NCBI RefSeq assembly: GCF_006345805.1
Contig: NC_043006.1
Location: forward strand, 36,084,001-36,148,000
Direction of reading: 5' to 3'
DNA: 64,000 nt
DNA from: Octopus sinensis
Lineage: Eukaryota
Position 1 is the first letter of the stretch; each line of letters begins with the position of its first letter. The position numbers and the translations under genes are program-made. Below, piece after piece: positions 1 to 32,963 of this stretch. Under the pieces are notes generated by a model. The model made no database searches. It was not told the origin of the DNA and worked only from the letters and a program-made list of their open reading frames with translations.

Positions 1-206
1 TCGAACTTCTTAAGTTTTTCTTACAACAATATCTTCCTCGAACATCATTTGCATTTGAATTACAAACCAGAAGGAATTCATACCAAACATAAAAAGACGA
101 GTGACATGTTGACCGGGGTATCCAAAGTGAGCAAAGTTTTTATATGTACAACCATGTATAGAGAAGCAGAATTCGAAATGAAGCGACTCCTGAAAAGTTT
201 AGAAGG
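1..206 (+). CDS. chs: Chitin synthase copy A, exon a (partial; starts before the window)
   Basis: Frame 1 reads SNFLSFSYNNIFLEHHLHLNYKPEG...VFICTTMYREAEFEMKRLLKSLEG. This matches the CHS segment around the T-M-W/Y-H/R-E motif. Donor GG|gtaaat at 206/207 is phase 2. Near-identical to the end of the copy B exon 24792-25708. Confidence 0.9.
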
Positions 207-244
207 GTAAATAACTATTTTTAATACATACGCACACACATAAT

Positions 245-635
245 ACATTCATACATACATGCAAATATACATACATACATGCATACACACACACACATAC
301 ATACATACATGCATACATACATACATACATACATACATACATACATACATACATACATACATACATACATACATGCATGCAGATTCTATACTGCTCACCA
401 GTGAAACTACATTATTGACTAAAATAACTGACCACTGTGCACCTACTACAGCTATGTAAATAGCAGGCACAACCGCAACGATTATTGTTGTATCGTATTA
501 TTGTTATTTTTGTTATTATTATTATTGTTGTTGTTATTATTATTATTATTATTATTTAATATTGTTGTTATTACTATTATTATTGTTATTATTATTATTA
601 GTAGTAGTAGTAGTAGCAGCAGCAGCAGCTGTAGT
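245..635. repeat. Microsatellite cluster (CATA)n, (TAT)n, (TAG)n, (CAG)n
   Basis: Directly visible. Confidence 0.95.
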
Positions 636-910
636 CAGAGTTTCTGAGAAAAAATAATTTTGGATTTGAAGTACTATCCCATGGAGAGAGTATTCTCTAT
701 GAAAGTAAGTAAAAAACCATCAGATGCGGTAGTAAAAGCTGTTAACGACATTGGAGAGGAATATTTACACTCAGTGAAATGAACCCTTATTCTGGCAGAT
801 TAACGCCTGCCTATATGCCCTGTCTACTATTGCAAAGCAGTACATGAGCGACATTCAAAGTTTGAACAAAACCGAAACAACAAAGAAAGTACCGTCATGG
901 AAAGTACCTA

Positions 911-1140
911 TTTCTTTATTACCCACACGGGGCTAAACACAGAGGAGACAAACAAGGACAGAAAAACGGATTAAGTCGGTTATATTGACCCCAGTGCGTA
1001 ACTGGTACTTAATTTATCGACCCCAAAAAGGATGAAAGGCAAAGTCGACCTCGGCGGAATTTGAACTCAGAACGTAACGGTAGACGAAATACAGCTATGC
1101 ATTTCGCCCGGCGTGCTAACGTTTCTGTCAGCTCGCCGCC
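911..1140 (-). mobile_element. tRNA-derived SINE, family 1
   Basis: Head GGCGGCGAGCTGACAGAAACGTTAGCAC...GAGTTCAAATTCCGCC and core GAGGTCGACTTTGCCTTTCATCC. Related copies near 9555-9880, 21200-21500, 40080-40220 and 49915-50060. Confidence 0.8.
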
Positions 1141-1623
1141 ATTTGCCAATACACTCAGACACTGCACACTGCTATGCACTGCACCAAAGATTACATTAGA
1201 ATGTTTTCATTACACTAGGATAAGAGACAAAACATGCAGCCAATGCATAGAGAGTTGCACTTGGCTGTCCATTGTAAATATGTCATAGAGGTGACCGAGA
1301 AGTAAAGTTAGCAATGATTTTGTTGCTGTAATTATGATTCTTTGTTCTATCTCGGGAGGGCCATTATGTCAATAATAAGCACTGGTTCTATTTCACTTCA
1401 TTTATTTGTCAATTGGTTGACTACTTAATCAATTAACTAACTGATTGTTTGATTAATTGTTAAGTTAATCAGTCAATCAACTAGGTTTGTCATAGTCCTT
1501 TTGTCGCTATTTGTGACCTCATGAATGACATGTCATCTCTGCTTGAAGTCCATTTCAGATTTGCCTGTCTGTATTTGTCAGTTGCATCTTTTGCTTTCAT
1601 TAAATCTTTTCCGTGAATTCCAG

Positions 1624-1888
1624 AATATCCTTGTCGAAAAAACTGTCTCATGTCTATATTGAGTCCCACGTGATTCTTGATAATGGTTGTAACGGAAAGG
1701 AACTTGGAGAGTTTGCTCTGCAGTTTCTGTCGTTACTTCAAAACGAACTAAAAATTGCTCGTACAAAAGTGTATGCAAATCGAATGCCTTACGGATTGCA
1801 GCTGCAATGGATCTTAAATGGTGGTGTTCCATTGTTTCTGCACTTGAAAGACTCTCAAAAAGTGAAACCGAAAAAGCGATGGAGTCAG
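1624..1888 (+). CDS. chs: Chitin synthase copy A, exon b
   Basis: ttccag|A acceptor completes the Gly codon. Encodes ...ESHVILDNG...MPYGLQLQWILNGGVPLFLHLKDSQKVKPKKRWSQ, matching the CHS TPYGGRL...HLKDK...KRWSQ block. Donor cag|gtaagt. 265 bp, same length as the copy B exon. Confidence 0.95.
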
Positions 1889-2023
1889 GTAAGTCTAATA
1901 CATAGATATGTGTGTATGTATGTGCATGTATGTGTGTATATATATATATATATATATATATATATATATATATATATATATATATATATATATATATATC
2001 TGTGTGTGTGTGTGTGTGAGTGC

Positions 2024-29912: not shown

Positions 29913-30205
29913 TGGCCCAGTGGTTAGGGCAGCGGACTCGCGGTCGGAGGATAGCGGTTTCGATTCCCAGACTGGGCGTTGTGTGTGTTTATTGAGCGAA
30001 AACACCTAAAAGATCCACAAGGCTCCGGTAGAAGGTAGTGGCGATCCCTGCTGTACTCTTTCGCCACAACTTTCTCTCACCTTTTTTTCAGTTGGCCTGC
30101 TCGCTTAGCCAGCGGGGTGGCGTCATTTGAAGGCTAAAACAATGCGAAGCGCATTGTGACCAGCAATGTGTAGCAACATCTGATAGCCCGGTCGGTCACG
30201 GTGAT
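29913..30205 (+). mobile_element. tRNA-derived SINE, family 3 variant
   Basis: Same head as the 28997 copy, with a different 3' half. Directly follows a long (TA)n tract. Confidence 0.75.
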
Positions 30206-30655
30206 ATATATGTATGTGTGCGTGTGTATGCATGTACGTACGTTACGTACGTATGTATGTATGTATGTATGTATGTATGAATGTATGCAATGTAAAAGCA
30301 TTTCATGAATCGGATAAAGAATACTCAATACAGATGTAGAATAAAGTTCATATTTTGACAGTCTGTGTATATAATTTATAAAACGGTGTCATTGAACTTC
30401 ATGACACCGTTATATACTCGTGCATCCATGGACGGTACAATATCATTCTTCACATATTTCCACAAGAAACATCGATACACATCCATGGAAAGGATATATG
30501 GAATAGATATGTTAATGTATGTTAATGTATGCGGTGTGTACGTTGGTTAATTTTCCAAGCGTTATCCAGTCTGAGCTTTTTATATGCATGCATATCAATA
30601 AATGCAAAGGAACGCATTAAACAACTGATATATCTTCGAATAGCTAAATACTTAC

Positions 30656-30802
30656 CAATCCCTGTTTAAAAGACAGTGCAACTATTTTCAAGCAGAGCAC
30701 ACTGCTTAGTAAAGGGATTAGGATAATCGGATGAAGTTTGGGACCGACTATCATAAGAAAAAATATTAATGCGGTGCTTTCCATTATAGAGCAGACGATA
30801 CC
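30656..30802 (-). CDS. chs: Chitin synthase copy B, N-terminal TM exon (not in the ORF track)
   Basis: ctattttcag|GGT acceptor, TTG|gtaagta donor. 147 bp, phase 0 at both ends. Reads GIVCSIMESTALIFFLMIVGPKLHPIILIPLLSSVLCLKIVALSFKQGL, resembling the CHS domain A ES...LP.LD helix pair. Splices in frame to the 25708 exon. Confidence 0.8.
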
Positions 30803-31109
30803 CTGAAAATAGATAAAATGGAAATAGCATGGATCAAACCGGTGGAAGAAGAGGTAAAAAATCAGAGAGACAAAACAGGCAGACAGGGAGAAAGCGAGAC
30901 AGAGAGAGAGAAGGAGAGCGAGAAAAAGAGAGTGAGATTTCTAGTTTTATAGGTTTTGAACTGATTGATCTGTTACGTTAACGTTGCCAATAATGTCTTT
31001 GCAATAATAATAATGATGATGATGATGATGATAATGATGATTTCAATTTTTGGCACAAGGCCAGGAATTTCGTGCGAGGGGGTAAGTGGATTACATTGAC
31101 CGATCCAGC

Positions 31110-32000
31110 CTGAAAAGATAAAATACAAAGTCGAGATAACCCCACAAGTGAACAACGCCCGGATACTGAACGACCGCAAGAAGAACAATTTCGTCACTCT
31201 GAGCGCACCTCGGACAAACTCATCTGGCAGCACATCCGTACTTGTAGAGCTCATCTCGAACCGGTAGTGCCCCCTGTATCACTTACCAGTGGTAGTTCCC
31301 GACCGGAAAGTCCTCTGAAACAGACTAGCCAAGAGGATGCACTGAGGCATTGATATTCAGCGCTCAAGAACAAGCTCTGAGACCTAATTACTCCAATTTC
31401 CGAATAGATAAGAGCAGCGAATCACTCCTTTGTAGGATGTGTGGCAGCAAGAACAAAACAATCTCACATATTGTGAGTGAGTGTAGCAAGCTGGCCCAAA
31501 AGCACTACAAAAGGGGGCACGATAACGTGGCTAAGTTTGTTCACTTGAGACTACGTGAAAAGTATGGCCTGGACAGAGCACAGAAATGGAAAGAACACGA
31601 ACCAGAAGGAGTCACCGAGAACAAAGAATATAAAATACTCTGGGATTTTACAATCCAACGTGACTCCCTAACCGATGCTCGAAGACTAGACATTGTTGTG
31701 ATAGATAAGGATAAAATTGGAATCAAGATTATAATATTACAATACCGGAGGATGCACGCATAAGTGACAAAGAACTAGAATAAATGGAAAAGTACAAACT
31801 TCTAAAAGTCGAAATTGCGAAAACGTGGATTATGAGGAGAGTGTCTGTCATCCCAGGAGCTGCAGGGGCACTCGGAGCACTAACAACCAAGTTCAAGAAA
31901 TATATCAGAGAAATCGTAACTGAGATAAGAATAGAGCAAGCCCCAGGACAGCACAATACAAATAGAGTGGAACTCAAGCATGTGTAAACAGAATAACAAT
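31110..32000 (+). mobile_element. R4/Dong-like (RLE-type) LINE 3' relic
   Basis: AQEQAL...CRMCGSKNKTISHIVSEC zinc knuckle, KILWDFTIQ, RRLDIVVID, and KYKLLKVEI...GALG of a restriction-like endonuclease domain. Multiple stops and frameshifts. Confidence 0.8.
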
Positions 32001-32836
32001 AAAATTGTAATAATTAAACCCCCAACAGAGGGAGACTTCAAAGGGACGCTCGTGGAAACCCTACAAAATCAACGATCACCCTGAACTCTAGCGAGCGAGT
32101 AGGGCATGAACTGCAATTTTACTAATTGTATTACTTACGTATGTAGTTTCGAACATACATACACTCTTTAGGTCCTCTTACTCTGCATTCAGAAGACATC
32201 CGGGATGCGATAATTGGGGGTAAAGGAGGATTGCACCAGCTCGCGACTTCTAGATTTTATGGGTGAATAGACAGGGACTAAACAAAACTAAACTGAACTA
32301 AAGCTACTTAGTTAAGGAACACAATACCACAGCCGATCTAGGAATCGACCTTATGATGTTGAGTCTAATACATGTACTACTAGGTCATGCTCCTTCACGT
32401 GAGATATAATGAGTTGAATATTTAGCGGTCTCACTGTGCGGCATCTTTTCAAGCTATTACTCAGTTTCACGTAACCGCTCGTCATAGATACATACATACA
32501 TACATACATACATGCATATGTGTGTGTGTATGTATGTATGTATGTATGTAAAATACATTTTTGTGCGTGACTTCGTGTTGTTGTTAGTCCTCACCGCTTG
32601 ACAACTAGTGTTGGTTTGTTTACCACCTGTAACTTAACGGTTCGGCAAAGGAGCCAAACCTCAAGAAATTAAGTCCTAAATACTGGGTTCGATTTTTTCG
32701 ACTAATACCCTTCTAGGCGATACCCCAGCATGGCCCCTGTCCAGTGACTTTAAAAAGTAAAGGGTAAAAGATGATGGTTACTAGTAAAATGACATGCAGT
32801 GTGACACTCGAAAACAATATTAAATTTGTGACATAC

Positions 32837-32963
32837 CGATACCAAAGATGGCAGCGACGGCCATTCGCTTAATTTGCCATGGAGGAGAAAAGACGTGCTC
32901 CATAAAAGTTTGACTATGGTAATAATTTCGGGTACAGCAAGCACTAATGTCATTGCAGCTATC
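32837..32963 (-). CDS. chs: Chitin synthase copy B, N-terminal TM exon
   Basis: tctcttcacag|G acceptor, TCG|gtatgt donor. Reads IAAMTLVLAVPEIITIVKLLWSTSFLLHGKLSEWPSLPSLVS, resembling the CHS AVPE motif helix. Phase 0 end matches the 30802 exon. Confidence 0.8.

Follow-up and report, generated by a model that had tools for sequence, protein, structure and literature searches.

Processive glycosyltransferases of family GT2 polymerize UDP-GlcNAc (uridine diphosphate N-acetylglucosamine) and extrude the resulting chitin through a membrane domain of their own. Molluscs have up to ten paralogues of such chitin synthases, and in Lottia two sets of them, CS2-4 and CS7-8, are tandemly repeated (Zakrzewski et al. 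2014, PMC3942024). Our subject is a 64-kb stretch of Octopus sinensis NC_043006.1, which we call the window and whose own coordinates we use throughout. It holds parts of two chitin synthase genes, copy A on the plus strand and copy B on the minus strand, which a first-pass annotation had described as an intact pair arranged tail to tail. As we best read it, the window contains fragments of two genes that belong to a tandem array in Octopus, an array of chitin synthases without a myosin motor and of at least four types. The tail-to-tail layout itself is, with good probability, an assembly artefact: a scaffolding join. Our literature searches turned up no account of a chitin synthase cluster in octopus.

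Where the two genes stop

Exon borders come from BLAST-anchored extraction, and the homology between A and B from a self-BLAST of the window. There is only one run of N in the window, a scaffold gap of 100 N, and both genes can be seen directly to end at it. To its left lies the intron of A between exons e and f; to its right, in reverse, the intron of B between exons c and d. No reading frame is cut, since both flanking contig ends stop within introns, and the two sides of the gap are not continuous with one another. The homology of B to A ends at 17774, the first base past the gap.

What the window lacks is the rest of each gene. A ends after exon e and B after exon c, so that B is without the exons for the EDR and QRRRW motifs. 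The C-terminal exons f, g and h of either copy are nowhere in the 64 kb, five C-terminal tblastn queries (E ≤ 10) having returned noise only; at this threshold the exons for the final ~330 residues are absent for both copies, as are the SWGTR motif and the C-terminal transmembrane region. This absence comes about because the genes are cut off, and it is no sign that they fall outside the chitin synthases. SWGTR is present on the continuation of A in the O. sinensis contig VCDQ01001854.1 (in protein model P0122, as DQSWGTRDG) and in exon g of the Octopus vulgaris orthologue of B, which we call L003. The idea that both copies are intact is not supported, each being without its 3′ exons in the window. 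Nor is the tail-to-tail pair, a layout that exists only across an unsized gap truncating both genes. We looked for two 3′ ends facing each other on continuous DNA and found that the sole link between the genes is the 100 N.

Both break points are continuous in other assemblies, that of A in an O. sinensis contig and that of B in O. vulgaris. The contig, VCDQ01001854.1, on which our loci L004 and L006 lie, shows no more than 3 substitutions and 8 one-base indels against the window over 9950-17673, and it runs on unbroken for 31.5 kb past the point matching 17673, where its continuation reads TATGAATATTTTTACCCCC... Exons f, g and h of A are found there, ~8, 15 and 20 kb past the gap point (L006 9938-10171, 17097-17381 and 21479-21928). 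Repeats aside, no part of this extension is present in the window, and at least 30 kb of it, when examined, reached no B-like sequence. For the other flank, L003 passes straight through the position matching 17774. Exon d follows 282 bp further on, and then come exons e, f and g; all four are open, span more than 5 kb and carry EDRW, QRRRW and SWGTR. Two options are left: a wrong join, or a gap that conceals at least ~40-50 kb.

Most likely, a scaffolder connected a contig end in the e-f intron of A to a contig end in the c-d intron of B, with the 100 N as a placeholder and one of the two contigs probably inverted or misplaced. Exons f-h of A and d-h of B would then lie on sequence outside the window. 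A and B themselves are old paralogues, and selection has kept their frames.

Two probable members of an array

The self-BLAST shows just one inverted, collinear stretch of homology, between A(+) 1-14333 and B(-) 24997-17774, made up of six blocks of 74-91% DNA identity and broken on the A side by an insert of ~6 kb at 1951-7969. Exons b (265 bp) and c (760 bp) have identical lengths, AG/GT borders and splice phases in A and B, and the introns are homologous too. The annotation had noted this sharing of exon lengths, phases and intron sequence, and had counted 12 differences among the 88 residues of exon b. Our exact borders and blocks agree with the one, and we arrive at the same count for the other (20 of 265 nucleotides); in exon c, 82 of 253 residues differ. 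The annotation had also reported transposable element differences between the copies, and these are real: a PIF1/Helitron-like insert and a Mos1 mariner are both found only in A.

That the copies are paralogues and not alleles, another early claim, follows directly from comparison with O. vulgaris. Counted in substitutions, A is 99-100% identical to two O. vulgaris loci, L001 and L002, which hold the paralogues that we call A1 and A2. B is 94-98% identical to L003 counting gaps, with ~1% substitutions, over 36 kb that include the region upstream of B. Between A and B the identity is only the 74-91% given above. Since A and B are each ~99% identical to a different O. vulgaris locus, they are paralogues. 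A phylogeny, which had been proposed as a check, gives the same answer. In our neighbour-joining tree the octopus copies form one clade, apart from Aplysia and Mizuhopecten, and within it B clusters with L003 and the Octopus bimaculoides protein P0001, and A with L002 and L001; A and B thus duplicated before O. bimaculoides diverged from O. vulgaris and O. sinensis. A fourth type, P0005 on the O. sinensis contig VCDQ01001785.1, is ~75% identical to both A and B over exons b and c. Of what was first proposed, then, chitin synthase paralogues that arose by local duplication and kept their frames stand, and a simple two-gene event gives way to an array of at least four paralogue types.

The O. 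vulgaris loci also give us an order. On retrieval none of L001-L003 carried the flag '(reversed)', which did appear for the O. bimaculoides locus L007, so we read the three as a head-to-tail array, all on one strand and ordered B, A2, A1. The orthologues of B and A1 are ~280 kb apart, with A2 between them. In O. vulgaris coordinates the junction in our window joins ~79.839 Mb, ascending, to ~79.554 Mb, descending, as expected from inversion of the whole interval or from an inverted or misplaced contig. According to the published comparison (PMC10700109), the genomes of the two species are largely collinear, with few inversions, and in the O. sinensis assembly 14% of the bases are unplaced and 5.2% of the BUSCOs duplicated. 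Presumably, the O. sinensis genome has an O. vulgaris-like order here.

Motifs, frames and constraint

A and B are both chitin synthase genes of family GT2. Their conserved blocks translate to chitin synthase peptides, which, searched against the protein collection, bring up chitin synthases from octopus and other molluscs. The partial protein of A matches Pfam Chitin_synth_2 with 80.2 bits (gathering cut-off 27) and has the motifs ATDSDM, QMFEY, GEDRW and QRRRW. The window protein of B has no Pfam match, which we put down to its stopping before the second half of the catalytic core; of the set of donor-binding, EDR and QRRRW motifs it shows only ATDADM. Chitin_synth_2 is present in P0001, the O. 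bimaculoides orthologue of B. The O. vulgaris model, P0006, has no recorded Pfam domain of any kind, and EDRW and QRRRW are present at its locus, L003. We had considered the R-to-H change in GACG(R/H) of A as a sign of inactivation and dropped it, as yeast Chs1 has E there.

All exons within 1-32963 are open, as the annotation had it, and B reads 735 amino acids without a stop, all 735 codons from the ATG at 32953. When the 160 observed A/B substitutions were placed at random in a simulation, the probability of finding no stop was 0.004. The aligned introns have 25 indels per 2.4 kb and the exons none in 1.23 kb. The rarity of stop-free simulations and the indel-free exons both argue that the frames have been kept by selection. 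At the level of residues, constraint is weak. The ratio of nonsynonymous to synonymous substitution rates (dN/dS) between A and B is 0.87 over exons a-c, with 0.46 in exon b and, along exon c, 0.25 at its start, 1.33 in its central linker and 0.69 at its catalytic end. For B against its O. vulgaris orthologue the range is 0.72-0.82. Each copy presumably encodes a working, expressed enzyme today.

The linker with the dN/dS of 1.33 is a Ser/Asp-rich segment that connects the N-terminal membrane region to the catalytic core (window 10503-10922, exon c codons 46-185, and its counterpart in B). Its length varies among paralogues: in L001 exon c has 751 bp, in L005 it has 724 bp.

At the other end of B, in its putative first exon, N1, two in-frame stops come directly behind the ATG (MGEA*L*DYPGF). 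The exon is otherwise open, and the same stops are found in O. vulgaris (L003 15904-16053). The start codon of B has probably shifted to the methionine of exon N2, where the O. bimaculoides protein P0004 likewise begins. Counterparts of exons N1-N3 in A lie off the window.

Possible exchange between paralogues

A is a mosaic. Positions 1-9800 are of A1 type, 99-100% identical to L001 and including the A1-specific PIF1/Helitron-like insert. A patch of A2 type follows (Table 1), and 16200-17673, with exon e, is of A1 type again at 99-100% identity to L001. The switch points lie at ~9800-9950 and 16100-16200. A simple unequal crossover is ruled out as an explanation, as the sequence goes from A1 to A2 and back to A1; the patch of ~6 kb may be a tract of interlocus gene conversion or the product of a chimeric contig. 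The O. sinensis contig has the same right-hand switch, but is of A2 type over 9279-9950, where the window is of A1 type. The O. vulgaris locus coding for P0017 differs from window 1-10196 by 0.3-0.5% substitutions together with the mosaic.

B has a smaller patch of its own. Nucleotides 1-360 of its exon a are of L003 type and nucleotides 361-840 of A2 (L002) type; over nucleotides 781-840 there are 0 mismatches to A2 against 10 to L003. Against its orthologue, B diverges by 2.2% in exons and by ~1% in introns, an excess in exons that results from this conversion-like, A2-type patch in exon a. The patterns in A and B fit interlocus gene conversion.

Weighing the alternatives

Could A and B really face each other? 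The assembly, as given, places them so; the length of a gap is merely an estimate, and order and orientation within gene arrays may differ between close species. A real convergent layout would, however, require the gap to hide a long stretch with both 3′ halves in it: at least 31.5 kb of sequence on the side of A, of which at least 30 kb has been examined without meeting B-like sequence, and in addition exons d-h of B, where d-g alone take more than 5 kb in L003. With the O. vulgaris orthologues on the same strand, ~280 kb apart and separated by A2, in a species reported to be largely collinear with this one, we consider such a layout quite unlikely. A real inversion, with breakpoints in the e-f intron of A and the c-d intron of B, would have left two 3′-truncated pseudogenes back to back, and the jump from ~79.839 Mb ascending to ~79.554 Mb descending is just what one breakpoint of a simple inversion would produce. 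We nevertheless find this very improbable: the near-identical O. sinensis contig is uninterrupted across the break point in A, the breakpoints fall at non-homologous positions, and the junction is a run of N with no sequenced breakpoint. Moreover, the paralogues are direct and not inverted repeats, so non-allelic recombination between them would not invert the interval. Altogether a juxtaposition that is real, whether by inversion with breakpoints inside both genes or as a convergent pair at least 50 kb apart, strikes us as unlikely; if true, it would set this genome structurally apart from O. vulgaris, within an array whose members also exchange kilobase-scale conversion tracts. Inverted duplicates meeting at a gap are also a common signature of false duplication, from which one might take A and B for uncollapsed haplotypes of one gene. 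That is scarcely credible. The copies are 74-91% identical in DNA and differ at the 12 and 82 residues of exons b and c already mentioned, against a reported heterozygosity of ~1.2% in O. vulgaris (PMC10700109), and their ~99% orthologues sit at two different O. vulgaris loci, B having an O. bimaculoides orthologue as well. This divergence and these separate orthologues led us to reject A and B as haplotigs.

A wrong join between two array members is compatible with a further suspicion, namely that B, alone or together with A, is decaying and would be non-functional even when complete. The dN/dS of B against A and against its O. vulgaris orthologue, the two stops after the N1 ATG in both species and the truncation of the O. 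vulgaris model P0006 all lean that way. Set against them are the 735 open codons from the N2 ATG and exon lengths exactly kept beside introns rich in indels, the open exons d-g of L003 with their three motifs, the O. bimaculoides protein P0004 that also starts at the N2 methionine, and a divergence from the exon a 'orthologue' that stems largely from the conversion patch. Decay is thus doubtful in our view. Several points do tell against a false join between two preserved genes. The window may instead carry a real rearrangement specific to the species or the individual. For the O. vulgaris loci, strand was read from the absence of the '(reversed)' flag, and order was taken at the level of the chromosome, OX597822.1. 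No O. sinensis sequence with the 3′ half of B was found; the protein search for a model of that half in O. sinensis returned none, a weak negative given that it also missed the known relatives P0001 and P0005, and another protein search returned no O. vulgaris model. Lastly, the overall dN/dS between A and B is high, which makes the present-day function of each copy less certain.

Features of the window and its gene models

Table 1. Coordinates of features in the window and of the orthologous loci in O. vulgaris
Feature	Coordinates	Strand	Remarks
A exon a, 3′ part	1..206	+	ends ...KRLLKSLEG, donor GT; 5′ end of gene beyond left window edge
A exon b, 265 bp	1624..1888	+	AG/GT; border extraction
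Transposable element insert in A intron b-c	1951..7969	-	missing from B; same insert in O. vulgaris L001 at 99-100% identity
A mosaic patch, A2-type	9900..16100	+	exons c, d and A2-specific mariner; 99.7-100% identical to L002
A exon c, 760 bp	10368..11127	+	variable Ser-rich linker, then donor-binding ATDSDM, GACGHTYP, QMFEY; borders, translation
Exon c read-through open reading frame of A	10377-11237
Mos1/mariner transposase open reading frame, 293 aa	12629..13510	+	open; HTH_48 and Transposase_1; in A intron c-d
A exon d, 156 bp	14456..14611	+	CPGCFSLYR region; borders, translation
A exon e, 261 bp	16484..16744	+	catalytic motifs GEDRW and QRRRW; final exon of A in window
Scaffold gap, 100 N	17674..17773	.	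flanks: A intron e-f (left), B intron c-d reversed (right)
B exon c, 760 bp	19981..20740	-	ATDADM, GAACGRTHP, QMFEY; final exon of B in window
B exon b, 265 bp	23114..23378	-	AG/GT borders
B exon a, 917 bp	24792..25708	-	hydrophobic N-terminal region; extraction
B exon N3, 147 bp	30656..30802	-	
B exon N2, 127 bp	32837..32963	-	first usable ATG at 32953 (MTLVLAVPEII...); 32963 is the N2 acceptor
B exon N1	37347..37495	-	homologous to first coding exon of O. bimaculoides LOC106880633; beyond the 1-32963 range of the first-pass annotation
L003, B orthologue	OX597822.1 79.53-79.55 Mb		model P0006
L002, paralogue A2	OX597822.1 79.66-79.71 Mb		model P0003; exons a-h
L001, paralogue A1	OX597822.1 79.81-79.84 Mb		model P0017

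The part of exon a of A that falls in the window matches O. vulgaris P0017 at 100% of its amino acids. In the insert of the following b-c intron there are three overlapping open reading frames at 2332-6185 (-), of 202-563 amino acids, with PIF1 helicase and Pif1 2B domains and STPR repeats, a content that marks a Helitron-like element. The mariner of the c-d intron is common to A, L002 and the O. sinensis contig, and occurs in neither L001 nor B.

Elsewhere in the window there are several perfect or near-perfect palindromes and microsatellites of the (TA)n/(TATATG) type, at 26744-27397, 34495-35285, 37653-37997, 29700-29914 and 7520-7670. GC content goes down to 18% in the 34-36 kb region. Introns of A and of B alike contain these simple repeats again. 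Upstream of B are two open reading frames, at 46767-47531 (+) and 52774-53478 (+), which by eye resemble a gag with zinc knuckle and a reverse transcriptase; neither has a Pfam match at E ≤ 0.001. We saw no other host genes in the 38-64 kb region.

The public octopus models deserve a word of their own. P0002, P0122, P0017, P0003, P0006 and P0001 are all fragments, and none shows a convergent A/B pair. The O. sinensis RefSeq model P0002 ('chitin synthase chs-1-like') is 100% identical to exons c-e of A except for its last residues, and it and P0122 (LOC118760849) each represent half of a single gene. In the O. sinensis contig one base pair is deleted close to the end of exon e (L004 ~7675, corresponding to window 16736), and this gives P0002 its aberrant C terminus (…VVLLQVPP). 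As for B, its orthologue P0006 is 94-100% identical to it per exon, and P0001 (O. bimaculoides LOC106880633) is 88% identical over exons b and c. The O. vulgaris models have faults as well: P0003 skips exons d-f, P0006 reads through the donor of exon c, and P0017 is truncated.

For annotation this means that the two genes of the window are not to be taken as a convergent pair or as complete enzymes. More generally, octopus chitin synthase counts and models are fragmentary, and breaks between contigs, sequence left unplaced and exchange among the paralogues distort them.

Comparison with known chitin synthases

Octopuses have a small tandem array of myosin-less chitin synthases of their own, in which the exon c linker evolves fast and signs of concerted evolution are seen. 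From it one may reasonably begin to ask which of the copies works in the beak, the radula, the sucker lining or the stylets. How does it relate to systems already described? Fungal and oomycete enzymes of known structure, Chs1 of Saccharomyces cerevisiae (7xs6) and those of Candida albicans (7stl) and Phytophthora sojae (7wjm), have a GT2 core that aligns with A, with ACG, QxFEY, EDR and QRRRW conserved. Only ~150 residues align, however (E 1e-9), and the membrane regions are not comparable by sequence.

Among animals, the lophotrochozoan groups A-C of Zakrzewski et al. are fused to myosin, and the octopus genes do not belong with them, the myosin motor being absent. The N-terminal exons of B and its full-length relatives (P0001, 949 amino acids) have only hydrophobic segments in its place, and no myosin Pfam domain is on record for the octopus matches. 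The metazoan type I chitin synthases, which include sponge, cnidarian, amphioxus and some lophotrochozoan enzymes, are likewise without a myosin head, and the nearest non-molluscan matches of our copies are sponge, cnidarian and amphioxus proteins, with no arthropod or nematode enzyme among the 120 matches listed. This taxonomy of matches suggests that the octopus copies fall in the class that Zakrzewski et al. (2014) call type I. Unlike that class, the octopus C-terminal parts P0005 and P0122 have no SAM domain on record.

With the molluscan expansions (PMC3942024) the octopus array has its plan in common: local duplication, a common exon structure, Chitin_synth_2 and the motifs EDR, QRRRW and SWGTR are found in both. 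The octopus clade differs from them in being short, without a myosin motor and with at least four types (A1, A2, B and that of P0005). Its genes are also 20-55 kb long and rich in transposable elements, stand 100-150 kb apart in O. vulgaris and show conversion-like mosaicism. In these features the octopus array extends the known molluscan pattern; it is nothing new in kind.

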